Assembly (NCBI GenBank): GCA_965112735.1
Contig: OZ218951.1
Coordinates: forward strand, 2,108,001-2,172,000
Length of the DNA: 64,000 nt
Origin: Phaeosaccion multiseriatum
Lineage: Eukaryota; Protista; Ochrophyta, other classes
Reading direction: 5' to 3'
Part shown: in pieces, positions 4,931-51,700 of the stretch
How positions within the stretch are numbered: the stretch's first letter is position 1
Layout of the letters: every line of letters starts with the position of its first letter
Translations under genes and position numbers: made by a program
The notes under the pieces: model-generated
What the model was told of the DNA's origin: nothing
Databases searched by the model: none
The model's input: the letters and a program-made list of their open reading frames with translations, nothing else

Positions 4931-7307
4931 ATGGCGCAGCAGGCAACTACAACGCCCGAGGTACGACCTAGCGCCCTCTTGGAGGACGACTCTGTGCTTC
5001 AGAGAGAAATGCGCAAAGCGAGAGGGGGGAGTTCGAATGGTAGACACGATAGCTGCGGAAGGACGATTAGCTGCGGAAGGACGCTCCCGAAGTTGTGAGC
5101 AGCGCCCCCTTTTGAAGTTGGGACGCTTACGTAACGCTCCCGAAGTTGTGAGCAGCTTGCCCTCTTTTGAGGCACAGTACGCAGTAGCAAGACGACTGGA
5201 GAGAAAGAAGGGAGGGGGGGTCATTCTGCGGATACGATAGCTGCGCTGGGAAGCTCGCGTGTCGACCTATGAGCCGCTCTCCGTTGATCCCTTTTTGTCC
5301 GGTTTATGCGCCCTCTCCCCCCTTAACTCCTTTCCCTCCACAACACCAGGCGCGGCGACTCGGACAGGCTCTGGCAAGGGGAGATAGCTTCCTCACTGTG
5401 AGAGCGCTGATTAGGAAGCTCATCGCCAAGCACGGCAAAGCGAGTTTGGATCAGCCTATCGATGAAGAGGGCTATTCGTCTGCACTCTGCGCTTCAAGAT
5501 ACGGTCGACTGGATGTCGTGGACCTTCTGTTGCGGGAAGGGGCCTCCTTCAGAACCAGAGGCGGGCCCTTTGGAGACACGGCGTTGATATGCGCTGCCTG
5601 CAGCGGGCACGATCAGGTGGTGAGGCGGCTGTTGGACATTGGAGCCCCTGTGGACCAAGCGAGTGACGCAGGAGTTACTCCCTTGCTTGCAACCTCAATT
5701 GATGGGCACTCCACGATAGTGCAGCAGCTGCTCTCGGCGCGTGCTAGTGTCGACTTGGCCGACAAGCAGGGGATTTCTCCGATTTGGATGGCCTCTCAGA
5801 ACGGGCATGGCTCTGTTGTAAGGCTCCTGATCTCAGCCCAAGCGGATGTGAACCACGCAAGTAATCGCGGGGCTACTCCGCTTCTGCAGGCATCACTCAA
5901 TGGGCATGCGGGCATTGTACAGCAGCTCATCAGGGCTCACGCCATCATCGACAAGGCTGACCCCGAAGGTGCCACAGCTCTTCACATTGCCTCTCAACGT
6001 GGAGACGACGCCGTGGTGGAGAAGCTTCTCTGTGCGGGAGCACAGGTGGACAAATGGACCACCACCGGCAAATCACCCCTTCTTCTTGCCGCCCAGAATG
6101 GGCACGAGGCCGTCGTCGCTCGTCTCATCTCTGCGGGACCCCCCATCGACAAGGCTGACCCCAAAGGTTTCACTGTTCTTCACATTGCCTGTCAGGAAGG
6201 GCACGACGCCGTGGTGGAGAAGCTTCTCTGTGCGGGAGCACGTGTGGACAAAGAGGCCAACAATGGCGCAACACCCCTCATGCTTGCCGCGGAGGGTGGG
6301 CACGAGGTCGTCGTCGCTCGTCTCATCTCTGCGGCACCCCCCATCGACAAGACTGAACTCAACGGTGTCACTGCTCTTCACTTTGCCTCTCAACATGGAC
6401 ACGACGCCGTGGTGGAGAAGCTTCTCTCTGTGGGAGCGCGTGTGGACAAAGTGACCAACAATGGCGCAACACCGCTCATACTTGCCGCGAACAATGGGCA
6501 CGAGGCCGTCGTCGCCCGTCTCATCTCTGCGGGACCCCCCATCGACAAGGCTAACCCCGGAGGTTTCGTCTCATCTCTGCGGGACCCCCCATCGACAAGG
6601 CTAACCCCGGAGGTTTCACAGCTCTTCACCTTGCCTGTCAGGAAGGGCACGACGCCGTGGTGGAGAAGCTTCTCTTTGCGGGAGCACGTGTGGACAAAGG
6701 GGCCAACAATGGCGCAACACCCCTTCTTCTTGCCGCGTGGGATGGGCACGAGGCCGTCGTCGCTCGTCTCATCTCTGCGGGACCCCCTATCGACAAGGCT
6801 GGCCCCAAAGGTTTCACTGCTCTTCACGCTGCCTGTCAGGAAGGGCACGACGCCGTGGTGGAGAAGCTTCTCTGTGCGGGAGCACGTGTGGACAAAGAGG
6901 CCAACACTGGCGCAACACCCCTCCTCCTTGCCGCGCAGCATGGGCACGAGGCCGTCGTCGCTCGTCTCATCTCTGTGGCATCCCCCATGGATGCCTCAAG
7001 AGTAGACATTATTTCCCCGCTGGTTGCCGCTATCTGCAGTGATCAGCACATCATTGCGCGGCAGCTCCTCTCGGCCGGTGCTTCGGTGGACAAGGCCTTG
7101 GCTGGGGCACGGTGGTTTCTGCTCGGCCGGGACATCGAGCAGCGACTTATGGAGGCGGCAGCAGCCTTCTTCCGGTCCCAAACCGCGCTGGACCTCATGC
7201 GAAGGACGGATAAGACCTTCGGCAAGGAGAGCGGAATCCTGCCGCTGGAGAGGCCCGGGCGGGTGCAGAGCGAGACGTGGGAGAGCGTGGCGGAGGAGAT
7301 GAGCTGA
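4931..7307 (+). pseudogene. Ankyrin-repeat protein family A copy 2, frameshifted by a 50-bp tandem duplication
   Basis: Exon 1 4931-4960 (MAQQATTTPE|gtacga). Exon 2 from 5350 (caccag|ARRLGQAL). 6517-6566 is duplicated at 6567-6616, shifting the frame between the 5269..7005 and 6657..7307 ORFs. This is the longest repeat array of the copies. Confidence 0.8.
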
Positions 7308-8272
7308 GCGAGCAGGAGGGATGCGCAGGGTGGGGGCTGGTAGGGCAGCGACGACTTTGGCATTGAAAGAGAACCGCTCCAGCTGCTCACTTGCACCAGT
7401 CATGCCGCACATGCGAGTGAGCATGTACATCAGGATGCGATGCGAGAGAGAGACTGCCCACGGCACACTGGCTTGGCGTAAGGGCGGTGAAGTGATTGCG
7501 ATCCTCTGTCGCAGAGAGGAGCGGAGCACAGGAGGTAGGGGGTCGGGGGGGGAGGGGAGTCACGTGTGTAGCTTACGGGATCAATGGGTGAAGTGTATGG
7601 CTTGAGGGGGGGGGGGAGAGGGAAGGTCAATTCGTTTGAAGGGGGGAGAGTGTAATCCCGATGGACCGAGGCCGAGGGCTTGCTGTGCCCGCATGTAGTC
7701 GTAGTCGTAGCTTAGAAGGGTACTGCCTTGATAAACACACAATGATAAAAGGTGAACGCCAGGTCCTAGGCGGGGGTCGTGCTCGTGTGGAGGCAAAAGG
7801 CAGGCACCGCTCATCTAGGCAGCAGCTGCGCGGTCGCGTCTGTCCGCACTCAACACAGCCTTGCTGCCGCTGCCCCCTCGCCCCAAGCAACGGAACTCCC
7901 CCCCTCCTGCGATCCAAGGCATGGGATCTTGCCTCATAGACTTGGATCAGCAGTTTGTTCTGGCTTGGAGTGAGAATGCTCTCCGCGTGCGAGTCGCCTT
8001 ACAAGGGAGAGGAAGCACTCAAGGAGCACACATGTCGGGGCCGAGACATCGCTCTGAGAAGGATCTTAAGTTGCGTGACTGAATATTAATGCAAATTACG
8101 ATATCAAATGAATAAGGATCCTTTCTCTCTGCCTATGGTCACACGAAGCTTGTTGTTGTCGAAAGCTGCGGAGCACCGAGCACCTGGTGGTGAAGGTGCT
8201 TGCCATCAGAGCAGCGACGGACCCGAAAGATGGGCGGGGCGGAGGTAGGCCCATCCGGAAGATGGACATCGC

Positions 8273-8985
8273 TCACCAGCTGCATCGCGAAGGAGAAGGC
8301 GAAGGGAGGAGGACAGATGTGAGACAGCGTGGAAGCATATACTCAGCCAGTCCCCACTTGCACCACCAGCACTCACCCTCCCCACTTGCCCCACTTGCCC
8401 CACTTGCCCCATCCCCATCCGCCCCATCCGCCCCAGTGGTAGCTGTTATCGCCAGGGGTAAAGGATGCCCAAGAAGTTGAGCGGGGGGGGGCGCACACGA
8501 TCCGGGTCGATGGCGGCGGAGTCAATTGGATCCGAGTAGATGAGGAGCGCGGAGTGGTAAGGGAAAGACGGTGAGAGACAGACAGTAAGCAGGTGTGAGC
8601 GATGTAGGGAGACGTCACTTACAGTTTGCGTCCCCTCTGGTGGCCTTCGCCTCGAGAGCCGTAGCTCCTGTAGCGGAGCGGCGCCCGGAGTGAAGGTGAA
8701 GAGCGACGGGGGAGGGACGAAGGGCGGAACGGAGGCGGCAGGGGCAAAAGCGAGCGTACAATATATGTCGAGCGGAGCGTGAGGCAGAGAAGAGGTGTGC
8801 GAGAGCCGAGAAGAGGAGAGCGGAGCGAGTGTAGAGGACGTGCACGGGCACAAGCAGGCAAGATCCGATCCTTGAACTTACAGCTTGCGGGCCGGCTTGT
8901 CCTTGATGGTGTCGGGGACTTCGGCGGCGCCGGAGAGCACTGCCACGAAGAGCAGGGCGAAGAGAGTGAGGATGACGCGAGTCAT
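8273..8985 (-). CDS. Secreted RxL-delimited peptide precursor, Trp/Gly/Lys-rich (4 micro-exons)
   Basis: Exons 8985-8882, 8667-8623, 8442-8377, 8279-8273. Donors GTAAGT/GTAAGT/GTGAGT, CAG acceptors, all introns phase 2. Product: MTRVILTLFALLFVAVLSGAAEVPDTIKDKPARKL-SYGSRGEGHQRGRKL-YHWGGWGGWGWGKWGKWGKWGGW*. Confidence 0.8.
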
Positions 8986-9280
8986 GGTGCTTTGCTGGTA
9001 GTCTTGCGGCAGTAGCGAGGCCTGAGGCAACTGTGGTTGTGAGCAAGGCAGAGAAAAACAAAAAAAAATGCACCCCTCCTGGAGCCCTTTTTTTGGACCA
9101 CCCCCCTTGATAAGTGATCGTGACAACCCGTGCCAAGATTTGCAGGTGTATGGGTATGACCAGAGGGTTGTCCGGGGCAGGTGGTCAGGCGGGAAGGCAG
9201 CGGACGAGGTTCCTTTGCACACTGGGTAGGAAGCGCTGGGCCCCACGCGTGCTGGTGGCGATGACGCACAGGCTGGGCGC

Positions 9281-10557: not shown

Positions 10558-11430
10558 TCAGTTCTCGCAGTTGCAGGGGAGGCCATTGGCGTGCGCCCAC
10601 CGCTTCATGTCCTCAAAGGCGTCCTTCCTCCCCGCCCTCCACCTACCCGTGTTGAGCAGCACATCCGGAAATGAACCCTGGTTCCATGGACACATGGCGC
10701 TCGGCAGCAGTAGGCTTTCGCCGTACTTGACAGCAAAGAAACAAACAATAAGGTCCCTCTTGCACAGCACCTCCAAGTGCCCTCCCCCGCAGCTCAGGTA
10801 GCCCCCCATCGCCACTCGCTACCACCCGCTGCCGCCTCAAGCTCAGGCCTGACTCTGCGGTGATTCAGAAGCATCTCCAGCACATTGATACATCCTTTGT
10901 GCGCAGCCTCGCTCCACACACCCCAGTCCAATGGAGTAAATGCCTCATCCGACAACAGCCACGTGACCATGTCCACGTCCCCTCTCAATGCGGCTTGAGT
11001 GCAAGTATACTCGTTCCAGGGGCATGGTCTCTTGTTAGGGCTTTCCGAGCGGAGCCACTTGAGAATACTCGTGCCGTGCTTGGCATTCTCGGCAGCGCCT
11101 TGGCACACTTTCTCGCACCATGCGCAGCCGTGGCGATGGAGGGCCTTGGCCTTGGCCTTGGCCTCGCAGATGCTCACATCTCCCCACAAGGCTGTAGCGT
11201 GGAAAAAACTGACGCGCGCCCGCCGTAGATCCGAATAGAAGAGAGGTCTCCAACCGGGGATAAGCGGCGCTGTACAGCCTCTTCCAGTCCTTGCTCACAC
11301 CAGCGACGAAGATGCCCTTCCCCAACAATGGCCAGCCAGGACCTTCCGCCTCATGTCCTCCACCGCCAGCACCTTGGCACGGGGCGAAGGCTCCTCCGCG
11401 TAAAAGAAGGGGCGCTATTCCCCCTCTGTG
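10558..11430 (-). pseudogene. F-box-like/CPW-type ankyrin-repeat protein pseudogene (algal/giant-virus type family)
   Basis: Fragments in several frames: KVLAVEDMRRKVL..IFVAGVSKDWKRLY, ILKWLRSE..PCPWNEYTCTQAALRGD, GGGHLEVL, CPWN, RWAHANGLPC. Multiple frameshifts. 5' limit approximate. Confidence 0.7.
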
Positions 11431-11657
11431 TAGATGTGCGGACGGCACAAGTGGCCCACTCGCAGTCTGCACAGCCTGGTACATGCAAAGCAAAAACCCG
11501 CCTCTGTGCTCATCCCGCTCATCAAATTTGGGTCTTTGCAGGACGGCCTTTGCAATCAAGAATACTATCATCCAAAGGGCTCCAAGAGCGTTGCCCGTGT
11601 CACACAACACAACAACACAGGAGCTATCTCGCAGGACCCAACCCACGCAAGCCCACC

Positions 11658-12841
11658 ATGAACCTCTCTCTCTTCGCTCTCTTCACCCTGCTCCTTGTCG
11701 CAGTGCTCTCCAGCGCCGCCCGAGTCCCTGACACCTTCCCCGAGGCCCGCGAACTGCAGGAGTAAGTTCCATGAGCATCGAAAGGGGGGAAGATCTTTTG
11801 CCCCGCTCTTGTCGCCTCATTCGAACACACCTGCTCTTGAGCCCGCTGTCCCTCCTCTGCCTCGCAACCCCCCGACTCATTGCCCGCCTCCGTGCGCTTC
11901 TCTCCCCCTCCTCCTCTCTTGACATCCGCCTCCACCGCCTCCACTCCCCCGGGCTCGCGCTTCGTCCTCTCCTGTGACGTTTCCTCTCCATCGACCTCAC
12001 GGACTGCGCCAACAATAGCGACGGAAACGATGAAGATGACTTCGGGGATAATGGCGACCGCCGCGCCCGCAAACTGTAAGCCCCCAAGTGAACTTGCATG
12101 CTCAAGCGGAGTCTTCTTCTCCTCACTCTACTCTCTTCTCTCCACTGCTCCTCTCTTCTCGGCCCTGCGGGTCACACCGCGGACCGGGCTTCTATCAACT
12201 TCGGTCTTCACTTGTATCGACAACAGCCAAGCATCGCCCACACCTGCGCCCTCTGGCAACCGCCGCGCCCGCAAGCTGCAGGAGTAAGTTCCCCCCTCGC
12301 GCCCTCTTTGCGTCCCTCCCTGGGTTTCTCTCTCCGTCCCCTCCTCTCCCGGCTTTACACTTGCCTTCTTCTTGACACCTTCCTCTCCGCCCCTACCCTT
12401 ACGCTTCTTCCCTCTCCTGTCCTATCTCCATCGCGCGCCATCTGCACACCATCGTCGCGTCGTGTCAGGAACGGAGACGAAGAAGATGACTTCGGGGATG
12501 ATGGCGATGAAGATGGCTTAGGGGATGATCGCGACCGCCACGCCCGCAAACTGTAAGCCCCCAAGTGAACTGCATGCTCAAGCGGAGTCTTCTTCTCCTC
12601 ACTCTACTCTCTTCTCTCCACTTCTCCTCTCTTCTCGGCCCTGCGCTTCACACCGCGGACCGGGCTTCTATGGCTTCTATCAACTTCGGTCTTCATTTAC
12701 ATCGACAACAGCCAAGCATCACCCACACCTGCGCCCTCTACGTAAGTTCCAGCTCGGCGTTTTCCGCTCTTCTTTTTGCTTACTCCACCTCCGTATCGTA
12801 GTCCTTCTTTTCGCTGCAGAGGAGCCGACTGCCGCAACTGA
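11658..12841 (+). CDS. Secreted RxL-delimited peptide precursor, acidic/Pro-rich (6 micro-exons)
   Basis: Exons 11658-11761, 12019-12075, 12227-12283, 12469-12552, 12712-12741, 12820-12841. All donors GTAAG, all introns phase 2. Product: MNLSLFALFTLLLVAVLSSAARVPDTFPEAREL-QDDGNDEDDFGDNGDRRARKL-QASPTPAPSGNRRARKL-QENGDEEDDFGDDGDEDGLGDDRDRHARKL-QASPTPAPSTGADCRN*. Confidence 0.85.
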
Positions 12842-13689: not shown

Positions 13690-15600
13690 CTAGGCCTAGA
13701 CACCTCTAGGCCTATAGGTGGGATGGAGCCGAAGTGAGGGAGTGAGGGGGGTGAGTGAGGGAGTGAGTGAGGGAAGGATGGAGTGCTGTGTGAGTGAGAG
13801 AGGGGGGAGTAGTGAGGGTGGGGAGTGAGTGAAGGCTTGGGTGCGTGCGTGCGTGCGTGAGTGAGAGTGAGTGCGTGCGGGAGTGATTGGGTACGCGAGG
13901 GACTGAGGGAGTGAGGGGGGTCTGCCAGGAAGTGAGGGAGTGAGGGAGTAAAAGCGTGACGGAGGGAGGGTGGGAGGGAGGGAGGGAAGGAGGGAGGGGA
14001 GTGGGTGAGTGAGTGAGGGGGGGGAGATGGATGGAGGGAGGGAGGGAGGGAGGGAGGGAGGGAGGGAGAGAGGGAGGGAGGGAGGGAGGGAGGGAGGGAG
14101 GGAGGGAGGGAGGGAGGGAGGGAGGGAGGGAGGGAGGGAGGGAGGGAGGGAGGGAGGGAGGGAGGGAGGGAGGGAGGGAGGGAGGGAGGGAGGGAGGGAG
14201 GGAGGGAGGGAGGGAGGGAGGGAGGGAGGGAGGGAGGGAGGGAGGGAGGGAGGGAGGGAGGGAGGGAGGGAGGGAGGGAGGGAGGGAGGGAGGGAGGGAG
14301 GGAGGGAGGGAGGGAGGGAGGGAGGGAGGGAGGGAGGGAGGGAGGGAGGGAGGGAGGGAGGGAGGGAGGGAGGGAGGGAGGGAGGGAGGGAGGGAGGGAG
14401 GGAGGGAGGGAGGGAGGGAGGGAGGGAGGGAGGGAGGGAGGGAGGGAGGGAGGGAGGGAGGGAGGGAGGGAGGGAGGGAGGGAGGGAGGGAGGGAGGGAG
14501 GGAGGGAGGGAGGGAGGGAGGGAGGGAGGGAGGGAGGGAGGGAGGGAGGGAGGGAGGGAGGGAGGGAGGGAGGGAGGGAGGGAGGGAGGGAGGGAGGGAG
14601 GGAGGGAGGGAGGGAGGGAGGGAGGGAGGGAGGAGGGAGGGAGGGAGGGAGGGAGGGAGGGAGGGAGGGAGGGAGGGAGGGAGGGAGGGAGGAAAGGAGG
14701 AAGGGAGAGGGGAGGGAAGATGGAGGGAGAGACGGAGGAGGGAGTGAGGGAGTGAATGAGTGAGTGACACCTCTGGGCCTATAGTGGGGATGGAGCCGGA
14801 GTGAGGGAGTGAGGGGGATGCGTGAGGGAGTGAGGGGGTGGGTGAGGGAAGGATGGAGTGCTGCATGAGTGAGAGAGGGGTGAGTAGTGAGGTTGGGGAG
14901 TGAGTGAGGGCTTGGGTGCGTGCGTGCGGGAGTGATTGGGTGGGCGAGGGACTGAGGGAGTGAGGGAGGTCTGCCAGGAAGTGAGGGATTGAGGGAGTAA
15001 AAGCGTGACGGAGGGAGGGTGGGAGGAAGGGAGGGAGGGGAGTGGGTGAGTAGGTGAGGGAGGGAGGGAGGGAGGGAGGGAGGGAGGGAGGGAGGGAGGG
15101 AGGAGAGAGGGAGGGAGGGAGAGAGGGAGGGCGGGAGAGAGGGAGGGAGGGAGGGAGCGAGGGAGGGAGGGAGGGAGGGAGGGCGGGAGGGAGGGAAGGA
15201 GGGAGGAGAGGGAGGGAGGGAGGGATGGAGGGGGGGAGGGAGGGAGGGAGAGACGGGAGTGAGTGAGTGAATGAGTGAATGAATGAGTGAGTGAGTGAGT
15301 GAGTGAGTGAGTGAGTGAGTGAGTGGGTGAGTGAGTGAGTGAGTGAGTGAGTGAGTGAGTGAGTGAGTGATGGAGGGAGGGAGGGAGGGCGGGAGGGAGG
15401 GAAGGAAGGGAGGGAGGGAGGAAGGAGGAAGGGAGAGAGGGAGGGAAGAGGGAGAGACGGAGGAGGGAGTGAGGAAGTGAATGAGTGAGTGCGTGCATGC
15501 GAGCGTGCGAGTGCGTGCGTCCGTGTGTCTCGCGTGAGTGAGTGAGTGAGGAGTGGGTGAGTGAGTGCTGGAAAGCGTGCGTGTTTGTGTGAGTGGGTGA
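13690..15600. repeat. Compound (GGAG)n/(GAGT)n microsatellite block with an internal ~1.07 kb direct duplication
   Basis: Near-pure GGAG run ~14035-14690. gacacctct(a/g)ggcctatag..gggatggagccg heads two similar segments at ~13700 and ~14766. Confidence 0.9.
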
Positions 15601-17718: not shown

Positions 17719-19234
17719 ATGGCGCAGCAGGCAACTTTTACGCCCGAGGTACGGATGTAGCGTCCTGCCTCCGATAAGGTGGTATCATTTTTAAAATAGG
17801 AGAGATGGGTATGAAGCTGCGAAGCTCGCGTGTCGACCTATGAGCCGCTCTCCGTTGATCCCTTTTTGTCCGGTTTATGCGCCCTCTCCCCCCTTAACTC
17901 CTTTCCCTCCACAACACCAGGCGCGGCGACTCGGACAGGCTCTGGCAAGGGGAGATAGCTTCCTCACTGTGAGAGCGCTGATTGGGAAGCTCATCGCCAA
18001 GCACGGCAAAGCGAGTTTGGATCAGCCTATCGATGAAGAGGGCTATTCGTCTGCACTCTGCGCTTCAAGATACGGTCGACTGGATGTCGTGGACCTTCTG
18101 TTGCGGGAAGGGGCCTCCTTCAGAACCAGAGGCGGGCCCTTTGGAGACACGCCGTTGATAGGCGCTGCCGGCAACGGACACGATCAGGTGGTGAGGCGGC
18201 TGTTGGTTATTGGAGCCCCTTTCGACGAAGCGAATGACGCAGGAGTTACTCCCTTGATGGCAGCCTCAGGTAGAGGGCACTCAACGATAGTGCAGCGGCT
18301 GCTTTCGGCGCGCGCTAGTGTCGACTTGGCGGAGAAGCAGGGGTTTTCTCCGATTTGGATGGCCGCTCACAACGGGCATGGCTCTGTTGTAAGGCTCCTC
18401 ATCTCAGCCCAAGCGGATGTGAACCACGCAGATAATCTCGGGGCTACTCCGCTTCTGCAGGCATCGACCTATGGGCGTGCGGGAATTGTACAGCAGCTCA
18501 TCAGGGCTCACGCCATCATCGACAAGGCTGACCACGAAGATTTCACTGCTCTTCACCTTGCCTCTCAATATGGACACGACGCCGTGGTGGAGAAGCTTCT
18601 CTGTGCGGGAGCACAGGTAGACAAATGGACCACCACCGGTAATTCATCCCTCATCCTTGCCGCGCAGAATGGGCACGAGGCCGTCGTCGCTCGTCTGATC
18701 TCTGCGGGATCCCCCATCGACAAGGCTGACCCCGAAGGTTTCACTGCTCTTCATATCGCCTCTCAAGATGGACACGACGCCGTGGTGGAGAAGCTTCTCT
18801 GTGCGGGAGCACAGGTGGACAAAGGGGCCAACAATGGCGCAACACCCCTCGAACTTGCCGCGCTGAATGGGCACGAGGCCGTCGTCGCTCGTCTCATCTC
18901 TGTGGGATCCCCCGTGGATGCCTCAAGAGTAAACGTCCCTTCCCCGCTGGTTGCCGCTATCTGCAGGGATCAGCACAGCATTGTGCGGCAGCTCCTCTCG
19001 GCCGGTGCTTCGGTGGACAAGGCGTTGGCTGGGGCACGGCGGTGTCAGTTCGGCCTCGGCATCGAGCAGCGACTTATGGAGGCAGCAGCAGCCTTCTTCC
19101 GGTCCCAAACCGCGCTGGACCTCATGCGAAGGACGGATAAGACCTTCGGCAAGGAGAGCGGAATCCTGCCGCTGGAGAGGCCCGGGGGGGTGCAGAGCGA
19201 GACGTGGGAGAGCATGGCGGAGGAGATGGGCTGA
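17719..19234 (+). CDS. Ankyrin-repeat protein family A copy 3 (intact)
   Basis: Exon 1 17719-17748 (MAQQATFTPE|gtacgg). Exon 2 17921-19234 is open throughout. Fewer repeats than copy 2. Confidence 0.88.
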
Positions 19235-20298: not shown

Positions 20299-21014
20299 TC
20301 ACCAGCTGCATCGCGAAGGAGAAGGCGAAGAGAGGAGGACAGATGTGAGACAGCGTGGAAGCATATACTCAGCCAGTCCCCACTTGCCCCACCAGCACTC
20401 ACCCTCCCCACTTGCCCCACTTGCCCCACTTGCCCCACTTGCCCCATCCGCCCCATCCGCCCCAGTGGTAGCTGTTATCGCCAGGGGTAAAGGATGCCCA
20501 AGAAGTTGAGCGGGGGGGGGCGCACACGATCCGGGTCGATGGCGGCGGAGTCAATTGGATCCGAGTAGATGAGGAGCGCGGAGTGGTAAGGGAAAGACGG
20601 TGAGAGACAGACAGTAAGCAGGTGTGAGCGATGTAGGGAGACGTCACTTACAGTTTGCGTCCCCTCTGGTGGCCTTCGCCTCGAGAGCCGTAGCTCCTGT
20701 AGCGGAGCGGCGCCCGGAGTGAAGGTGAAGAGCGACGGGGGAGGGACGAAGGGCGGAACGGAGGCGGCAGGGGCAAAAGCGAGCGTACAACATATGTCGA
20801 GCGGAGCGTGAGGCAGAGAAGAGGTGTGCGAGAGCCGAGAAGAGGAGAGCGGAGCGAGTGTAGAGGACGTGCACGGGCACAAGCAGGCAAGATCCGATCC
20901 TTGAACTTACAGCTTGCGGGCCGGCTTGTCCTTGATGGTGTCGGGGACTTCGGCGGCGCCGGAGAGCACTGCCACGAAGAGCAGGGCGAAGAGAGTGAGG
21001 ATGACGCGAGTCAT
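20299..21014 (-). CDS. Trp/Gly/Lys-rich RxL peptide precursor, copy 2
   Basis: Same four-exon structure as 8273-8985. Terminal peptide [24 protein letters not shown], with one more Lys-Trp-Gly unit and frame preserved. Confidence 0.8.
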
Positions 21015-23694: not shown

Positions 23695-25353
23695 ATGAAC
23701 CTCTCTCTCTTCACTCTCTTCACCCTGCTCCTTGTCGCAGTGCTCTCCAGCGCCGCCCGAGTCCCTGACACCTTCTCCGAGGCCCGCGAACTGCAGGAGT
23801 AAGTTCCATGAGCATCAAAAGGGGGGAAGATCTTTTGCCCCGCTCTTGTCGCCTCATTCGAACACACCTGCGCTTGAGCCCGCTGTCCCTCCTCTGCCTC
23901 GCAACCCCCCGACTCATTGCCCGCCTCCGTGCGCTTCTCCCCCCCTCCTCCTCTCTTGACATCCGCCTCCACCGCCTCCACTCCCCCGGGCTCGCGCTTC
24001 GTCCTCTCCTGTGACGTTTCTTCTCCATCGACCTCACGGACTGCGCCAACAATAGCGACGGAAACGATGAAGATGACTTCGGGGATAATGGCGACCGCCG
24101 CGCCCGCAAACTGTAAGCCCCCAAGTGAACTTGCATGCTCAAGCGGAGTCTTCTTCTCCTCACTCTACTCTCTTCTCTCCACTGCTCCTCTCTTCTCGGC
24201 CCTGCGGGTCACACCGCGGACCGGGCTTCTATCAACTTCGGTCTTCACTTATATCGACAACAGCCAAGCATCGCCCACACCTGCGCCCTCTGGCAACCGC
24301 CGCGCCCGCAAGCTGCAGGAGTAAGTTTCCCCCTCGCGCCCTCTTTGCGTCCCTCCCTGGGTTTCTCTCTCCGTCCCCCCTCTCCCGGCTTTACACTTGC
24401 CGGCGTCTTGACATCTTCCTCTCCGCCCCTCTCCTCGCGCTTCGTCCCTCTCCTATTCATTCTCCATCGCGCGCCATCTGCACACCATCGTCGCGTCGTG
24501 TCAGGGACGGAGACGAAGAAGATGACTTCGGGGATGATGGCGATGAAGATGACTTCGGGGATGATCGCGACCGCCGCGCCCGCAAACTGTAAGCCGCCAA
24601 GTGAACTTCATGCTCAAGCGAAGTCTTCTTCTCCTCACTCTACTCTCTTCTCTCCACTTCTCCTCCCTTCTCGGCCCTGCGCTTCACACCGCGGACCGGG
24701 CTTCTATCAACTTCGGTCTTCACTTGTATCGACAACAGCCAAGCATCGCCCACACCTGCGCCCTCTGGCAACCGCCGCGCCCGCAAGCTGCAGGAGTAAG
24801 TTCCCCCCTCGCGCCCTCTTTGCGTCCCTCCCTGGGTTTCTCTCTCCGTCCCCTCCTCTCCCGGCTTTACACTTGCCTTCTTCTTGACACCTTCCTCTCC
24901 GCCCCTACCCTTACGCTTCTTCCCTCTCCTGTCCTATCTCCATCGCGCGCCATCTGCACACCATCGTCGCGTCGTGTCAGGAACGGAGACGAAGAAGATG
25001 ACTTCGGGGATGATGGCGATGAAGATGGCTTAGGGGATGATCGCGACCGCCACGCCCGCAAACTGTAAGCCCCCAAGTGAACTGCATGCTCAAGCGGAGT
25101 CTTCTTCTCCTCACTCTACTCTCTTCTCTCCACTTCTCCTCTCTTCTCGGCCCTGCGCTTCACACCGCGGACCGGGCTTCTATGGCTTCTATCAACTTCG
25201 GTCTTCATTTACATCGACAACAGCCAAGCATCACCCACACCTGCGCCCTCTACGTAAGTTCCAGCTCGGCGTTTTCCGCTCTTCTTTTTGCTTACTCCAC
25301 CTCCGTATCGTAGTCCTTCTTTTCGCTGCAGAGGAGCCGACTGCCGCAACTGA
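23695..25353 (+). CDS. Acidic/Pro-rich RxL peptide precursor, copy 2 (8 micro-exons)
   Basis: Exons 23695-23798, 24056-24112, 24264-24320, 24505-24588, 24739-24795, 24981-25064, 25224-25253, 25332-25353. One extra acidic + Pro-rich exon pair (EDGDEEDDFGDDGDEDDFGDDRDRRARKL, QASPTPAPSGNRRARKL) relative to copy 1. Confidence 0.85.
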
Positions 25354-26199: not shown

Positions 26200-28270
26200 G
26201 CCTAGGCCTAGACACCTCTAGGCCTATAGGTGGGATGGAGCCGAAGTGAGGGAGTGAGGGGGGTGAGTGAGGGAGTGAGTGAGGGAAGGATGGAGTGCTG
26301 TGTGAGTGAGAGAGGGGGGAGTAGTGAGGGTGGGGAGTGAGTGAAGGCTTGGGTGCGTGCGTGCGTGCGTGAGTGAGAGTGAGTGCGTGCGGGAGTGATT
26401 GGGTACGCGAGGGACTGAGGGAGTGAGGGGGGTCTGCCAGGAAGTGAGGGAGTGAGGGAGTAAAAGCGTGACGGAGGGAGGGTGGGAGGGAGGGAGGGAG
26501 GGAGGGAGGGAGTGGGTGAGTGAGTGAGGGGGGGGAGATGGATGGAGGGAGGGAGGGAGGGAGGGAGGGAGGGAGGGAGAGAGGGAGGGAGGGAGGGAGG
26601 GAGGGAGGGAGGGAGGGAGGGAGGGAGGGAGGGAGGGAGGGAGGGAGGGAGGGAGGGAGGGAGGGAGGGAGGGAGGGAGGGAGGGAGGGAGGGAGGGAGG
26701 GAGGGAGGGAGGGAGGGAGGGAGGGAGGGAGGGAGGGAGGGAGGGAGGGAGGGAGGGAGGGAGGGAGGGAGGGAGGGAGGGAGGGAGGGAGGGAGGGAGG
26801 GAGGGAGGGAGGGAGGGAGGGAGGGAGGGAGGGAGGGAGGGAGGGAGGGAGGGAGGGAGGGAGGGAGGGAGGGAGGGAGGGAGGGAGGGAGGGAGGGAGG
26901 GAGGGAGGGAGGGAGGGAGGGAGGGAGGGAGGGAGGGAGGGAGGGAGGGAGGGAGGGAGGGAGGGAGGGAGGGAGGGAGAGAGGGAGGGAGGGAGGGAGG
27001 GAGGGAGGGAGGGAGGGAGGGAGGGAGGGAGGGAGGGAGGGAGGGAGGGAGGGAGGGAGGGAGGGAGGGAGGGAGGGAGGAAGGGAGGGAGGGAGGGAAC
27101 GGATGAGGGAGGCAGGCAGGCAGGGAGGGAGGAAGGGAGGGACAGAGGTAGGGACGGAGGGAGGGAGGGAGGGAGGGAGGGAGGGAGGGAGGGAGGGAGG
27201 GAGGGAGGGAGGGAGGGAGGGAGGGAGGGAGGGAGGGAGGGAGGGAGGGAGGGAGGGAGGGAGGGAGGGAGGGAGGGAGGGAGGGAGGGAGAGAGGGAGG
27301 GAGGGAGGGAGGGAGGGAGGGAGGGAGGGAGGGAGGGAGGAAAGGAGGAAGGGAGAGGGGAGGGAAGATGGAGGGAGAGACGGAGGAGGGAGTGAATGAG
27401 TGAGTGACACCTCTGGGCCTATAGTGGGGATGGAGCCGGAGTGAGGGAGTGAGGGGGATGCGTGAGGGAGTGAGGGGGTGGGTGAGGGAAGGATGGAGTG
27501 CTGCATGAGTGACAGAGGGGTGAGTAGTGAGGTTGGGGAGTGAGTGAGGGCTTGGGTGCGTGCGTGCGGGAGTGATTGGGTGGGCGAGGGACTGAGGGAG
27601 TGAGGGAGGTCTGCCAGGAAGTGAGGGATTGAGGGAGTAAAAGCGTGACGGAGGGAGGGTGGGAGGAAGGGAGGGAGGGGAGTGGGTGAGTAGGTGAGGG
27701 AGGGAGGGAGGGAGGGAGGGAGGGAGGGAGGGAGGGAGGGAGGGAGGGAGGGAGGGAGGGAGGGAGGGAGGGAGGGAGGGAGGGAGGGAGGGAGGGAGGG
27801 AGGGAGGGAGGGAGGGAGGGAGGGAGGGAGGGAGGGAGGGAGGGAGGGAGGGAGGGAGGGAGGGAGGGAGGGAGGGAGGGAGGGAGGGAGGGAGGGATGG
27901 AGGGGGGGAGGGAGGGAGGGAGAGACGGGAGTGAGTGAGTGAATGAGTGAATGAATGAGTGAGTGAGTGAGTGAGTGAGTGAGTGAGTGAGTGGGTGAGT
28001 GAGTGAGTGAGTGAGTGAGTGAGTGAGTGAGTGAGTGATGGAGGGAGGGAGGGAGGGCGGGAGGGAGGGAAGGAAGGGAGGGAGGGAGGAAGGAGGAAGG
28101 GAGAGAGGGAGGGAAGAGGGAGAGACGGAGGAGGGAGTGAGGAAGTGAATGAGTGAGTGCGTGCATGCGAGCGTGCGAGTGCGTGCGTCCGTGTGTCTCG
28201 CGTGAGTGAGTGAGTGAGGAGTGGGTGAGTGAGTGCTGGAAAGCGTGCGTGTTTGTGTGAGTGGGTGAGG
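26200..28270. repeat. Compound (GGAG)n/(GAGT)n microsatellite block, copy 2
   Basis: Same layout as 13690-15600, with different tract lengths. Confidence 0.9.
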
Positions 28271-31094: not shown

Positions 31095-34000
31095 TCACAA
31101 CTGCCGATACGCCAAGATGCGCTCCAGCACCTCTCTCGAGTGCGGCACCGAAATTCTCCATCCGCTGAGCACCTTGGCCGCCGCTACCGCCCCTCCAGAA
31201 ACCTTGCGGGCCGCCCAACTACCACGGCGAGGAGCCGTCGAAGAAGACGAGGAGGGCCCCCCGCCTGGCAAGCTGTGGCGCTTCACCTCCACAAAGCTGT
31301 GGTCTTTGAGCTCAACGAGGGCCTTGTCCAGCTGGTGGTTCTGACTCAGCGTACCGTTGCGACGTAGCCGCGCCAAGAGGACTTCCTGATCCACCCCGGG
31401 GAGGCCTTGCTCATCATCCTCGTCTTCATCCCCACCACCTCCTCCTGCTGCTGCTGATGATGCTGCTGCTGCTCCTCCTTCGCCGTGTCCCTTGCGGTTG
31501 CCCAGGCCTACCGCCCCCCCCGCCCCCACCGTGCTCGCCGTGGTGCTCCTTTGCTTGCGATCCTCCCTCTCCACCGCCATCCTGGCAATGGTCTGGAGTA
31601 CCTCAATGTGCCGGGGCGTGAGCGACTGCAGCACGTACTCCAGCCCTTGTGCAGAAGACGCACCACCCTTCCACCTCCCCCCCTTGCCAGCCACACCGTT
31701 CCCCTTCAGCCCACCGCCCTTGGACCCCGCTGTGTCGCCCTCGACCTCTGCGTCGTACGGTGCAAAGGTTGCCGCTTCTTGCCACACAAAGTCAAAGAAT
31801 CCTCGGTGCTGCCCGTTGAGCTCCCCCTTCAGCCGGCCCCCCACCTGATCCTCCTCCTCCTCCTCCTCCTTCTGCTGTCGCTGCTGCTGTATCACCAACT
31901 TCTGCTGATGGTACTGATGTTGAACATTCCCCTTACCCTCTGCACCCGCAGGACCCGGCGACCCCAGCCTTTCACTCGTACTCCTTACCGATGATGCATG
32001 TCCTGGGTGTGCAGCCGACGACCCGCGGCTCTCACCATGACCGTAAGTTTGCCCTCCAAGCGCAGCGTACTCACCGGACTCGTTGCTATCGACACCTTCA
32101 CTGTTAAAGGCCGCCGAGGAAGGGCGGCCAACAATCTCTGCGTCCCACAGAAAGGCTGCATTGACGTGGTCCACAGAAGCAATGAGATGAATGTGCGGAC
32201 AGCAGGCGAGCCACGCCAGGGCCTCTTGGGAAGGGGCGTTGCGCAGTTTGCATCCGTCGATGTTGTGGACGACGAGGTAGAGATGGGAAGGGGCCGGCAG
32301 AGTAGAGAGGTTGGGAACCTTCTTGCTCTGTCAAGTAGCAGCAGAAGCAGCCGCGGTAGCACAGCAGTAGTGACAGAGTAGCAGCGGCAGTAGAAGGAAG
32401 AGAACACAGAGCCACCATAGCATGAACAGGGGGTGGGAGGGGGGTGGGAGGGGGGAGGGAGGGAGGGGAACAAATATAGTCAGGCTTACATGTCCTTCCC
32501 TCTCTCCTCTGGCCACTTTCAAAAGGGAGTGACCCATGCTGTTCGTTCCTATGTCAATACATGCTCTGAGACATACCGACCGACCTCACCCTCTCTCACC
32601 TTCGTGCTGTGCTCTCTCATGCCATCCGCCACCTGCCTGCGTATCGCCGACCTCGCCGCCGTAGCAGACGCGCGCTCAGGCTGAGAGGAGGAGGGGGGGG
32701 GAGGAGATGGAGGGATTCATAAGTGCTATGTAGGGGGTGGGAGTGCATCACTTTACCCCTCCCTCCTCCCCTCCTCCCCTCCTCCCGCCCTTCCCTCCCT
32801 CCATCCCTCCCTCCCTCCCTCCTCCCTCTCCTCCTCCCTTCCTCCACTCACCAGTACCCCGCCCACCCCCGCGCTACCGCCAACGCTGCTGCTTCCCCCT
32901 CCCCCGGTGCCAAGGGCCTTTCCGCCACCAGACGCCGCCGCTCGTGCCTGTCTGTAGGCCCCGTTGATGTTGAGAGCGTACTGCACAGGGTCGCTATCTG
33001 AGAGATCGGATCTACCCAGGACACGGTACGAGATGTCTGTGAAGAGAGGAGGGGAGGGGAGGGGAGGGGAGGGGAGGAGAGGGGAGAGGAGGGGAGGGGA
33101 GGGGAGAGGAGGGGAGGGGAGGGAAGGGGAGGGGAGGGGAGGGGAGGGAAGGGGAGGGGAGGGCAGGGCAGCAAGAATGAGGGCGGGAAGGGGGGAGGGG
33201 ACAGAGAGAGAGAGAGAGAGGGTTCCCTTCGACCTCGGATACCGCTACCGCCTATTCGGATACCCTACGTCTCGTACCGTCCAGCAGCGCCGCCACACTG
33301 GCCCACAGTTCGAACCCGAGAAACTCGTACACAGCGCCCCCGTCCCGACGCAGCTTCTGACGGACAAAGTCCTGCTCAGGTGCAGCAGTTGGTGATACAC
33401 GGGGCAGGAGCAGGGACAGGAGCAGAGTCAGGGTCAAGAGCAGGGTCAGGGGGTAGGTCGAGGGTGAGGGTGAGGGTGAGGGTGAGGGTCAAAGTCAGGG
33501 TCAGGGTCAGGGTCAGGGTCCGGGTCAGATGCAGGGCGAACGCGACAGCACAGCGGGAAGGACGATACATGCCTCCCATGCGGTCCACCTACCTGCAGGA
33601 GCTGCTTCTTGCTACCGAAGCCGTGCAGCAAAACGCTGTGCCCGCCCCCCGCCCCTTCTTCCCCTCCTCCCCCTCCTCCTCGCAGCAGGTGGTACCAATC
33701 GTCAAAGGCGCCCCCCGGCCGGGCGAAGCTCTGCCTGAGGGCGGTGAGGGCCCTTTGGTGGTGGTTGTCCTCGTTTTGCTGCTGCTTGGCCATGTCCAGG
33801 AGCTGACGCGGCCCGAGCGCCGCCAGAGACGATTGCCAAGCGGGAGGCACTGACGCCGTACCGCTGACGCCGCCTGCATTGGGGAGGGAAGGAGGAAGGA
33901 TGAAGGAGGGGGGGTGGGGGGGAAGGACAGGCGCAGAGAGTGTGTGAGACTGTGTGAGACTATGTGTGTGCGTGTGCGCGTGCGCGTGTGTGGTGCGTGT

Positions 34001-36025
34001 GCGTGCGCGGAAAGTGCAGAAAGCAACGAATGAAAGCACAAGCACCGGGTAATGGAGAGCCCCCCCCTGCACACATCCCAGAGGTTCGCTGTGTCGCGTT
34101 GACGCACCTTGCTCCCTCTTCCTCTTCATCGTCTTTCCCTTGCGCCCCTCGTCTTCCTCCCCGTCCCGCTCCTTCTCCTCGTCTGTGCTGCCGTCCTCGT
34201 CCTCCTCCTCCTCCTCCTCCTGCTCATCATCATCATCATCATCAGCGTCTTGCTCCGCTTGCTGCCCACGCCCTTTGCCTCCTCCTCCTCCCGCTGCTGC
34301 TGCTGCCCCCTTTCCCTTGGCCTTTCCGTATGCCTTTCCCTTCTGAGCTATGGCTTGCATGGCCTTCTTGGCAGCTCTCTCGTCGGCCTCTCGATCTTGC
34401 CTGCATACAAAGTAAGTGCGCGGGAAAGGGAAGGACGGGTATAGACCACGTTCGAGGTTGGGGATGGGAAGGTAGAGAGGGCGTGCACGTGATACATTCA
34501 TGCGTGCGTGCGTGCGTGCGTGCGTGCATGCATGCGTGTGTACGTATGTGCATACGTGCATATGTGCAAGCTTCGCCCAGACCCAAAAAGCAGCCCGACA
34601 AGACAAGCAGCAGAGTGCGGAGAAAGTCCACAAGTCGAAGCGCCTCGTCTCCTCTCCTCTTCCTCTTGCCAAGGAAGGGCTTTGTTCCAGCGCTCTGCCG
34701 GCCCTTCACCAAAACAACCGACTTTGACTGACTGACTGATTGAATGATGGAAAGCACTTCACTTCACTTTACTCACCTGTGCATAGACGCAATCTTGTTC
34801 CGCTTCTTCTTCTGAAACGCCTTCTTCTGTGCACCCCTTCCTCCTCCTCCTCCTCCTGCTGCTGCTGCTGCTGCCGCCGCTGCTACTCCTGACGCACTCG
34901 CAAGTGCCCCTACCTGGCTGCGCTTCGTTTGCCCACCGCTGCCGCCCAGAAAGTAGCACTGAGGAGAGAGATGGGGCGAGTGGGACAGGGCAAGGCAGAG
35001 CAGAGCACAGGAGAGCAAAGTGGACAACGCACGTCACAGGAGAGCCACAGCCAGAGAGAGAGAGTAAAAGGCGAGAGAGAGAGATGGAGAGAGAGAGTAA
35101 AAGGCGAGAGAGAGAGAGAGATGGAGAGAGAGAGAGAGACAGGAAGAGTGAGAACGACATGAGAACGAAATAGAGAGAGAGAGAGAATGCACACACTAGG
35201 TGAGCGTCCTCCTTCATCTGAGGGAGGACAGCGGGCGGCTCACTCGCTCCAAGGACGCGACGCACCACACAGCACAGACCACACGGCACACGACACACGG
35301 CAGGTGGGACTCACACACTTCACTCACTCACTCACTTACTCACTCTTTCATTCACTCACTCACTCACTCCTTCACACATTCACTTCTTCACTCCTTCACT
35401 CATTCAATCCTTCACTCACCGACGCCCCGTCTGGCAGCTGCGAGAAGGCCCGCTCATCGCTCTCTGTAGCAGCCGACCCACCGCCTCCCGCCCACCCCCC
35501 TTCCTCCTCCTCTCCACCAAAGTACGAGTCTCGGAAGGCCTCGATTGCGTCCATCTCCCTGTGGCGCTCGACCATGAGCGCCTCCTCCTCCTCCTCCTCC
35601 TCCTCCTCCTCTTCCTCCTCTTCATCCCCTTCCTTTTCCGCCTCCTCCTGCTCCTCCTCCTGCTGCCGCCCGACAACACAGCTAGCAGCAGCATCATCAG
35701 CACCGTCAAGAGTTGGTGATACAGAAGCATCAGCCGACTGCTGCCCTTCCCCCAAGACCGATGTCGATGCCGAGGCCTTCTTCCTCCTCTTGACGACGCT
35801 CCTCTCCATGTAGCGCGCGAAATGACTGCGCAGCGCCCCTGACGACTGCACGTGCTGCATCACAGCCGTCTCCGAGCGGAAAAAGTCGATACCCTCTCGC
35901 TTCCGCACGTCTTGCCACTTCTGGCCATGAGTCGGAGCTCGTGCGCAGTCAGCAGCAGCAGCAGCAGCAGCTCCTCCTCCTCTTCCTCCTCCTCCTCCTC
36001 CTCCTCCTCCTCCTCCTCCTGCTCC

Positions 36026-48704: not shown

Positions 48705-51700
48705 TCTCCTTTTCAACGCAGGCCCTGGCACCCCCGGCTCCGTGCTGCCACCCACCCGACGTATGAGCGCCCCATCCCCGTCCAGCGAGAGGGACTCCGA
48801 CTTCTACGCCAGCAGTCCCACTCGCCAGCCGGCCCGACGGGGCAGCAGCTCCAAGAGCAAGCAGCAGCAGTTGGTGATACAGCAGGGGGGGAGGGGGGAG
48901 GGGAGGGAGGAGGAGGAAGGGGGGCGCTTGCGCAGAAGAGGCAGCGGCACAAGGAATGATCCGGCCATGGCTGCGGAAGGCGATGTATCGGCAATTCTTT
49001 CCGTGGTGCAAGTAGGGGGGGAAGGAGGAGGAGGCACAGCAGCAGCAGCAGCAGCAGCAGCAGGAGGAGGAGGGGGAGGAGGAGGTGGAACAGCAGAAAG
49101 AGGAGCAGGAGGAGGCGCAAGATGGGGGGGGAGCAGGAGGTCGTCGTCGCCGGCCAAAGAGATGCGGACAGTGAGCTTCAGTCAGCAAGGACCGCTCATG
49201 CCTGGTGAGCATGCAAGCACCGCCCCCGCCGGAGCTGCGCACCCCTTCTTTCCGCCCTCTCCTTCCCCAGGGGGTGCACCTCCTGGTGCTGCTGCTGCTG
49301 CTGTTGCTGCTCACAGCCCAAGCTTCAGCCGCAGAGCAAGCTCACCCTCCACTGGCGCCAGCAGCAGTCATATGGGCAGCAGCAGCAGCAGCAGCCAGAG
49401 GAGAGGGACATGGCAGGCGCAAGGGCAAGGGCGAGGGCACGGCGAGGGCCACCTCCTTCCAAGCCCTCTCCGGAGGGCGGGGGGGAAGCTTCACCTCGAC
49501 AGCAACAGCAGCAATGACGGCGGCGGCGGTGCCGGCGGCAGACGAGGCAGCAGCAGCCCTCTGAGCGTCGTTGCAGGGGGTGGTGCGGGTGGGCGCACCT
49601 ACGCACACTCTCCAGCAGGGCGGCCAGTTTCAGTGCCAGTGCGAGCCTACGACGGCCTGCTGGATGATGACGACGACGCGGAGTACCAACTGGGCGAAGA
49701 GGAGGACGATGAGGATGAGGCAGACCGCCGCAAGAAGGACTGGCCCACGCAACTCCTCACCGCCACACAGGGGAGCGCCACGCTGGGCAAGTCGGTACGT
49801 GTGTGGGTGCGTGCGTGTGCGTGTGCGTGCGTGTGTGTGTGCGTGTGTGTATGTGTGTGGTGTGTGAGTGCGTGGGTGTGCGCGCGTGCGTGTGTGTGTG
49901 CGTGTGTGCGCGGGCGCTTATGTGTTGACCCCTTCCGAAGAGTCAACCGAAGATACCGAAGATACAGGTACCCCCTATCCATTTATTCCATCAGTCACCC
50001 CACTCATTCCTCCCCTCCTTCGACCACTGCTGCCACCGGCTCTACTGCTGTTGCTGTGTACATTTGGGCTGCCTCAGATGCCCAAGGAGGCCTCCCTGCG
50101 CAACAAGGTGGACTACTTGATCATGGTGTGCAGCAACGCGGAGAACTACGCCAAGACAGAAATCAAGAAGGTCCGTTTCTGCCTCTGTGTCCTCCTCCTC
50201 CTCCTCCTCCTCCTCCTCCTCCTCCTCCTCCTCCTCCTCCTCCTCCTCCTCCTCGGCTCCAGACTGGCCTAGAAGCCTATGCTCTAGGCCCTAGGCCGAG
50301 CGGCCTACGCCCGCTCTAGGCCTAGGCCGGCGGCCGTCGGCCGCTCTAGGCCGGCCATTTTTTCTCCCTAGGCCGGCGGTTCTAGGCCTAGGCCTCGACC
50401 TATCTGATTAGTAATTACGGCCGGCGCAGCCGGCCTGATTACTGATTCTGACCGGCGCCAGCCGGCCTGAGTACTGATTATGCGCCAGCCGGGGGCTGAT
50501 TACTGATTACGGCCGGCGCACACCGTAATCTTGTCCAGGGTCGAGGGAGGGAGGGAGGGAGGGAGGGAGGGAGGGAGGGAGGGAGGGAGGGAGGGAGGGA
50601 GGGAGGGAGGGAGGGAGGGAGGGAGGGAGGGAGGGAGGGAGGGAGGGAGGGAGGGAGGGAGGGAGGGAGGGAGGGAGGGAGGGAGGGAGGGAGGGAGGGA
50701 GGGAGGGAGGGAGGGAGGGAGGGAGGGAGGGAGGGAGGGAGGGAGGGAGGGAGGGAGGGAGGGAGGGAGGGAGGGAGGGAGGGAGCGAGCGAGGGAGGGA
50801 GGGAGCGAGGGAGGGAGGGAGGGAGGGAGGGAGGGAGGGAGGGAGGGAGGGAGGGAGGGAGGGAGGGAGGGAGGGAGGGAGGGAGGGAGGGAGGGAGGGA
50901 GGGAGGGAGGGAGGGAGGGGGGAGGGAGGGAGGGAGGGAGGGAGGGAGGGAGGGAGGGAGGGAGGGAGGGAGGGAGGGAGGGAGGAGGGAGGGAGGGAGG
51001 GAGGGAGGGAGGGAAGGAGGGAGGGAGGGAAGGAGGGAAGGAGGGAGGGAGGGAGGGAGGAAGGGAGGGAGCGAGGGAGGGAGGGAGGGAGGGAGGGAGG
51101 GAGGGAGGGAGGGAGGGAGAGAGGGAGGGAGGGAGGGAAGAAGGGAGGGAGGGAGGGAGGGAGGGAGGGAGGGAGGGAGGGAGGGAGGGAGGGAGGGAGG
51201 GAGGGAGGGAGGGAGGGAGGGAGGGAGGGAGGGAGGGAGGGAGGGAGGGAGGGAGGGAGGGAGGGAGGGAGGGAGGGAGGGAGGGAGGGAGGGAGGGAGG
51301 GAGCGAGGGAGGGAGGGAGGGAGGGAGGGAGGGAGGGAGGGAGGGAGGGAGGGAGGGAGAAAAGGAGGGAGGGAGGGAGGAGGGAGGGAAGGAGGGAGGG
51401 AGGGAGGGAGGGAGGGAGGGAGGGGAGGGAGGGAAGGAGGGAGGGAGGGAGGGAGGGAAGGAGGTAGGTAGGTAGGGAGGGAGGGAGGGAGGGAGGGAGG
51501 GAGGGAGGGAGGGAGGGAGGGAGGGAGGGAGTCGACCCTGGACAAGATCATCTGATTCTGATTACAGCCGGTGACCAGCCGGCCTGATTACTGATTTTGC
51601 GCCGGCCGGGGGCTGATTACTGGTTACGGCCGGCGCACACCGTAATCTTGTCCAGGGTCGATAGGCCTAGGCCGGGGGGGCTAGGGAAGGAGGGAGGGAG

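Follow-up and report, generated by a model that had tools for sequence, protein, structure and literature searches.

A predicted RxL-processed Trp/Gly precursor gene and its low-complexity relatives in a PX-clade ochrophyte

The minus strand of the window (the whole stretch of 64,000 nucleotides analysed here) carries a four-exon gene which, when cut at canonical splice sites, is predicted to encode a 73-aa precursor: a 32-residue leader, RKL, a 12-residue Gly/Ser/Arg spacer, a second RKL and a 23-residue tail of mostly Trp and Gly. On the sequence evidence the gene is real, conserved and unannotated, with its exons under purifying selection. There is about an even chance that it encodes a secreted prepro-polypeptide supplying structural peptides of the cell surface, such as those of a wall, a cyst or zoospore coat, or a settlement glue. 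The features of the gene are as follows.

8882..8985, minus: exon 1, 104 nt; putative signal peptide, pro-piece and the first RKL, split by the intron
8668..8881, minus: intron 1, 214 nt, GTAAGT...CAG, phase 2; retains some likeness to intron 1 of a C13 paralogue
8623..8667, minus: exon 2, 45 nt; 12-aa Gly/Ser/Arg spacer peptide and the second RKL
8443..8622, minus: intron 2, 180 nt, GTAAGT...CAG, phase 2
8377..8442, minus: exon 3, 66 nt; Trp/Gly/Lys tail built of 9-nt units
8280..8376, minus: intron 3, 97 nt, GTGAGT...CAG, phase 2; missing in the C13 paralogues
8273..8279, minus: coding part of exon 4, 7 nt; last Trp and TGA
8258..8275, minus: stop context, 17 of 18 bases in common with the acidic gene
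9082..9091, minus: upstream motif AAAAGGGCTC, about 100 nt 5' of the ATG

Architecture of the precursor

The plan given in the original prediction is confirmed as first read: four minus-strand exons, phase-2 introns, and the spacer and tail sequences. The Leu codon of both RKL motifs is divided by an intron. RKL had been placed at the end of each module, which holds for modules 1 and 2, whereas the last module closes at the stop. The spacer was first given as SYGSRGEGHQ; the sequence stands, but the peptide is really 12 aa long, with two more residues (RG) ahead of RKL. Exon 4 contributes a single Trp, and an unspliced exon 3 would stop one residue earlier.

The N-terminus resembles a signal peptide, with a basic N-end and a hydrophobic core at residues 5-16 (mean hydropathy 3.05). 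Signal cleavage probably follows Ala20 or Ala21, with small residues at the likely cut, and RxL sits 12-14 residues past this predicted site. Plastid targeting was rejected, as there is no Phe after the signal cut, where the ASAFAP rule needs one. The tail comprises 8 Trp, 10 Gly, 3 Lys, 1 Tyr and 1 His (35% Trp, 43% Gly; net charge +3, pI about 10), and is devoid of Arg, Pro, Ser and Cys. It contains two K-x-x-K spacings and six WxxW motifs, and the last 12 residues of exon 3 have a hydrophobic moment of 0.39 at 100 degrees and 0.56 at 120 degrees. C-mannosylation of the WxxW motifs was considered and dismissed: no DPY19 scored above the cut-off, and the best match lay inside an ABC transporter gene.

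Two short sequences link the gene to an acidic precursor gene nearby. The 13-mer formed by RKL and the donor site is found at nine places in the window, where chance would give 0.08, and all nine lie in Trp/Gly or acidic genes. The stop-context 18-mer occurs four times against 0.00 by chance, at two Trp/Gly and two acidic genes and nowhere else in the window, in agreement with the shared stop context first reported.

The upstream motif AAAAGGGCTC is kept, in exact or near form, at 14 of the 15 loci that carry the leader. Its occurrence across the genome is only weakly enriched (27 against 15 in the control) and it precedes ubiquitin-like genes too, on which grounds we rejected it as an element specific to the family. 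In a three-copy family with a ubiquitin-like domain it lies about 60 nt before the ATG (L189, C12:2716550-2717650; C12:2725838; C12:2740283). Possibly it serves this alga as a general promoter element.

Conservation among the copies

Contig C2 carries six intact Trp/Gly copies. The window contains two of these, in a tandem unit of 12 kb.

20299..21014, minus: second Trp/Gly copy, one 12-kb repeat unit further on; precursor of 74 aa whose tail has four Lys
21014-20911, 20696-20652, 20471-20403, 20305-20299, minus: exons of this copy

Across the six copies the open frame is intact together with all 18 donors and all 18 acceptors, both RKL motifs are present in 6/6, and the precursors measure 70-76 aa. 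Variable columns number 3/149 in exons 1-2 and 69/444 in the introns (Fisher p = 1e-6); the same comparison with introns 1 and 2 only gives p = 4e-4. All variation in exon 1 (3/104 columns) consists of two silent changes and one of Val to Ile, and exon 2 does not vary. Exon 3 ranges from 54 to 75 nt, with in-frame differences of 3, 9 or 15 nt; gaps in the introns and flanks are of any length. Taken alone, the in-frame gaps weigh little, because the repeat unit is 9 nt long and such tandems are common as non-coding microsatellites. Intron 3 is supported independently, since both C13 paralogues, which do not have it, share the ending of the spliced form: their last exon closes with Gly-Gly-Trp-stop and the bases that follow it. 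The public runs (n=4, one sample) are all DNA, with contigs that run through the introns, and contain no joint at the predicted introns.

The leader and its cargoes

It had been proposed that exon 1 be used as a query to list the cargo types and that further members would be found. A genome scan with the leader recovers the exon at 15 loci: six Trp/Gly genes of the window type, five acidic genes, one Tyr/Gly gene, two Trp/Gly genes on C13 and one lone leader. The cargo is of Trp/Gly, acidic plus Pro/Thr, or Tyr/Gly composition, and in every member it is low-complexity and Cys-free. All leader introns have a phase-2 donor. Ten further candidates retrieved with a loose pattern proved not to be real leaders.

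The five acidic genes alternate Asp/Glu and Pro/Thr exons, and the acidic gene of the window gains exon pairs via tandem duplication. The Tyr/Gly gene (L007) is a two-exon Tyr/Gly/Lys gene. The two C13 genes have a longer leader, a 6-residue acidic spacer and a Trp/Gly/His/Arg tail containing His-Gly-Gly-Trp units; like the window gene they follow a three-module plan, and they have the same ending and remnants of its introns 1 and 2. By these likenesses they are true diverged duplicates. Among the eight Trp/Gly tails the Gly spacing of Trp and the final GGW are conserved and Lys is not kept; net charge is +2 (L006), +3, +4, +2 (first C13 gene) and -1 (second C13 gene). In this second C13 paralogue (L008:2024-2100; C13 ~848880-848960) RKQ/RKH replaces RKL at the end of the spacer exon, which is tandemly duplicated together with its donor. 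The tail has a net charge of -1, and the gene may be decaying. The leader on C10 (L019:1492-1800; C10:1428828 on) is without RxL and is followed by part of intron 1 and then by unrelated sequence. It is a lone or truncated member of the family, with no cargo found after the leader.

In the window, the acidic relatives and the sequence between the precursor genes are arranged as follows.

11658..12841, plus: paralogous gene for an acidic plus Pro/Thr precursor; its leader exon is of the same type, and it lies 2.7 kb upstream on the opposite strand
23695..25353, plus: second copy of the acidic gene, with one extra 476-nt exon pair
10558..11646, minus: frameshifted ankyrin-type frame of a Cys-Pro-Trp repeat kind, between the two precursor genes and outside the family

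The first exon of the acidic gene had been described as the same 104-nt exon. It is equal in length and phase, but identity is limited to 70/104 bases and 50% of the residues, and the acidic exon closes with RELQE. The two genes align in exon 1 and the stop context alone, and have no cargo exon or intron in common. The original prediction further proposed a conserved chassis with interchangeable cargo exons. Frogs, cone snails and fungi are well known for precursors that keep the leader and vary the cargo, and the part of the proposal that concerns a common leader with differing cargo holds across the 15 loci. Not a single cargo exon, however, was found on two backbones, and exon interchange is unsupported because whole-gene duplication, divergence and internal exon duplication explain the shared 5' and 3' ends equally well. 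The symmetric (phase-2) exons would make swapping possible.

All five acidic genes face away from a basic gene 2.5-3.8 kb off (four Trp/Gly, one Tyr/Gly). An ankyrin-type frame also occurs in the other paired copies; lying between the Trp/Gly and the acidic gene, it means that the members of the pair are not separated by a bare promoter. All the acidic/basic pairs may go back to a single ancestral arrangement that the 12-kb duplications copied.

Other features of the window include ankyrin-repeat arrays with a 198-nt unit at 5269-7307 and 17816-19014 (plus); in the first of them a 50-nt duplication near 6517-6617 causes a frameshift. Very long GGAG/GAGG tracts, each 1.5-1.7 kb, lie at 13733-15489, 26473-28142 and 50543-52092, two of them inside the 12-kb repeat unit. 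Exons at 33446-34672 (minus) resemble origin recognition complex subunit 2.

The host genome

The genome amounts to 67 Mb in 22 contigs, with a eukaryotic 18S gene and a plastid. The host's RuBisCO large subunit shows 89-91% identity to its counterparts in Vaucheria, Chrysoparadoxa and brown algae, and the rbcL tree places it with them in an unresolved group (support 88/92). By this placement, the host is a PX-clade ochrophyte and not a diatom. On plastid contig C18 (L084:453-2892), rbcL is followed by a same-strand 266-aa frame, with no rbcS in that stretch. rbcL is found on both C18 and C21, and 16S on C18 and C19; the plastid genome may be split or rearranged.

We found no silicon-transporter (SIT, PF03842) match in the genome. 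The Site-1 protease domain PF23090 likewise gave no match, a search in which the control was silent too. The genome has aspartic protease genes at about six loci, among them three near-identical intronless genes on three chromosomes (C5:1946681, C9:141928, C12:460033).

Searches for relatives

Each exon was searched separately. For the frame of exon 1, exact look-ups found nothing on record. The word search with the leader profile produced 1567 candidates, none of them at E up to 10; with self scores of 66-79 bits, it was able to detect close relatives of 30-94 aa. The tail profile gave four word-search candidates and no match in the big search, and is powerless, as it recovers its own members only at E of 21 or worse. 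Searches for cingulin homology were blank, with a tail profile that misses its own members at E < 21 and a word search restricted to proteins that are not long. Pfam and the ESM Atlas contained nothing usable. A pattern of three Trp-Gly-Lys units matched 104 stretches in metagenomes; the 79 examined were 9-nt microsatellites with no leader or RKL and were rejected. Contig L156, labelled as human-gut metagenome, was left out of all comparison. Within these searches no relative appears, which falls short of establishing that relatives are absent.

Possible functions of the peptides

If the precursor provides structural peptides, its signal-peptide-like start would direct it into the ER, and cleavage after the Leu of each RxL along the secretory path would free the spacer and the flexible 23-aa tail, as in diatom wall precursors and oomycete RXLR proteins. 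The evenly spaced Trp would serve as stickers, stacking on polysaccharide and engaging in Trp-Trp and Lys-Trp contacts, and the tail could condense with polyanions, either the acidic peptides of the neighbouring gene or wall polysaccharide, to form an organic, non-mineral matrix. Diatom wall proteins are marked by RXL sites that follow the signal peptide and separate the repeats; among these proteins, the Trp- and Tyr-rich cingulins belong to an insoluble organic matrix. The protease that cuts RXL in these precursors is unknown (PMC4557024; PMC5525289). In oomycetes, another stramenopile group, RXLR is cut after Leu (PMC11754927), and a Tyr/Lys protein of similar composition from Amphora proved to be wall matrix (PMC4220933).

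An extracellular matrix role is favoured because the exons are conserved and their length changes in frame, because the Trp/Gly spacing and the final GGW outlast Lys in the distant C13 paralogues, because the cargo is low-complexity and Cys-free in all family members, and because the basic genes stand paired with an acidic partner. A flexible chain, regular aromatics, free repeat number, several copies and an acidic partner are best suited to a material. The argument loses strength because the pairing may reflect one copied arrangement with a broken ankyrin frame in between, because no homologue of known function was found, and because composition alone does not separate a matrix from a defence peptide. 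Small, secreted, flexible proteins rich in Gly, aromatic and basic residues and encoded by multicopy variants are known among mussel foot proteins 3 and 5, tick cement and plant class II glycine-rich proteins. The likeness of the present tail to these adhesive peptides is one of composition and not of homology, and Trp here prevails over Tyr.

An antimicrobial function was among the first suggestions, and the tail is indeed short, cationic and Trp-rich. A membrane-active defence peptide with a conserved prepro leader and a variable tail, in the manner of frog skin peptides or plant shepherins, is nevertheless unlikely. Such a role would suit 23 residues with eight Trp, net charge +3 and a pI of about 10, and a Lys at every third residue that yields the moment of 0.56 at 120 degrees; most of the differences between the six copies fall in the tail, and the sample's runs contain long contigs that are probably bacterial. 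The suggestion is weakened by a net charge that is not conserved, going from +4 to -1 among the tails (the -1 copy perhaps decaying). Moreover, the tail is 43% Gly and without Arg or Pro, unlike classical Trp-rich antimicrobial peptides; strongly acidic cargo stands behind the same leader; and the tail varies by slippage in the number of 9-nt repeats and not by substitution. Indolicidin-type peptides and shepherins resemble the precursor in being short, cationic, Trp-rich and Cys-free with a conserved prepro region and variable tail, and shepherins also in the release of several Gly-rich peptides: these Gly/His-rich peptides come from one signal-bearing precursor (PMC4695807). The gene described here departs from them by its low and unconserved charge, RxL in place of dibasic sites, and acidic cargo on the same leader. 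Chances are slim for a signal or recognition peptide (a pheromone, or one marking cell stage or mating) or a metal-binding peptide. The spacer is invariant in the six copies, and a small polyprotein cut at fixed sites resembles peptide hormone precursors, of which this build is typical; the His-Gly-Gly-Trp units of the C13 genes recall copper-binding prion repeats. Yet a tail whose length is free to change by whole repeats is better suited to a material than to a receptor ligand, the C13 genes do not conserve the spacer (theirs is acidic and 6 aa long), and the tail of the window gene has a single His. Oomycete RXLR and apicomplexan PEXEL proteins, too, have Arg-x-Leu shortly after the signal cut, and the RELQE of the acidic paralogue is PEXEL-like, but here the alga is free-living, the motif also stands between internal modules and there is no host-export context.

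A role in templating silica or another mineral, in which the peptide would act like a miniature W-type cingulin beside an acidic partner of silacidin type, for instance in a silicified cyst wall, is decidedly improbable. It draws on the signal, the RXL sites, the Trp-rich region with two K-x-x-K spacings and the acidic partner with its RxL-separated units; some xanthophyte cysts are said to contain silica. Against it, the genome has no SIT (PF03842) match, while all silicified Parmales and diatoms possess SITs (PMC10328945); the tail has no Ser and hence no phosphorylation, and the host groups with the PX clade, not with diatoms. The likeness to cingulins, on which the original prediction drew, holds for the layout: the W- and Y-type proteins of Thalassiosira pseudonana similarly combine a signal, RXL, low-complexity Gly-rich sequence, Trp and Tyr versions in one genome, and Lys at i/i+3. 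It does not hold for the motifs and size, as cingulins are 248-383 aa long and carry K(S/G)2-4K motifs (PMC9650480; CinW2 383, CinY2 248), against 73 aa here (70-76 in the copies), a fifth of the length, with three Lys separated by Trp-Gly, no Ser and no K(S/G)nK clusters; K(X)nK clusters are absent in L006 and C13. One peptide is built per exon, the host is a non-diatom with no SIT match, and no sequence similarity was detected. The Trp/Gly gene therefore does not look like a cingulin; it would work like the RXL-cut precursors of silaffin-1, silacidin and cingulin. It shares with the silaffin-1 and silacidin precursors a signal, a short pro-piece ending in RXL and units bounded by RXL, and the silacidin layout is copied by the acidic paralogue. 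It differs from them in that its units are not repeats of one peptide, the cargo is neither Ser/Lys-rich nor phospho-Ser, and the RKL codons straddle phase-2 introns. Extremely improbable, finally, is a non-working gene, that is, a decayed or silent leader with a 9-nt microsatellite, multiplied passively with the ankyrin-rich 12-kb duplications. The same 9-nt tandem does occur as a non-coding microsatellite in many unrelated contigs, the copies do lie in segmental duplications with frameshifted ankyrin genes, and the public runs (n=4), being all DNA, contained no RNA match. A silent locus would be hard to reconcile with exons 1-2 far better kept than introns (p = 1e-6), with 18 donors and 18 acceptors intact in six copies, and with C13 paralogues that retain the three-module plan and its ending.

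Significance

What appears to be new, against the systems compared above, is the host group, the build of one peptide per symmetric exon and the tail itself. Genes of this kind are missed by ordinary annotation because they consist of micro-exons and have no database relative, and other ochrophytes may harbour similar families unnoticed. Synthesis of the 23-aa tail would cost little, as would testing it as a coacervating or antimicrobial peptide.

Low-complexity secreted precursors cut at RXL have been described as typical of the silica proteins of diatoms and parmaleans. A rather unlikely extension of the extracellular matrix reading is that this non-silicifying PX-clade alga owns a kit of acidic, Pro/Thr, Tyr/Gly and Trp/Gly/Lys RxL peptides, one per symmetric exon, which co-assemble into an organic coat, and that the kit is a mineral-free counterpart, perhaps the ancestral form, of the silaffin/silacidin/cingulin system of diatoms. 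Were this so, the 73-aa precursors would be minimal substrates for finding the RXL protease. The same layout, in Trp and Tyr versions, in an alga of the brown/yellow-green lineage with no SIT match suggests that this route may be older and broader than silica walls.
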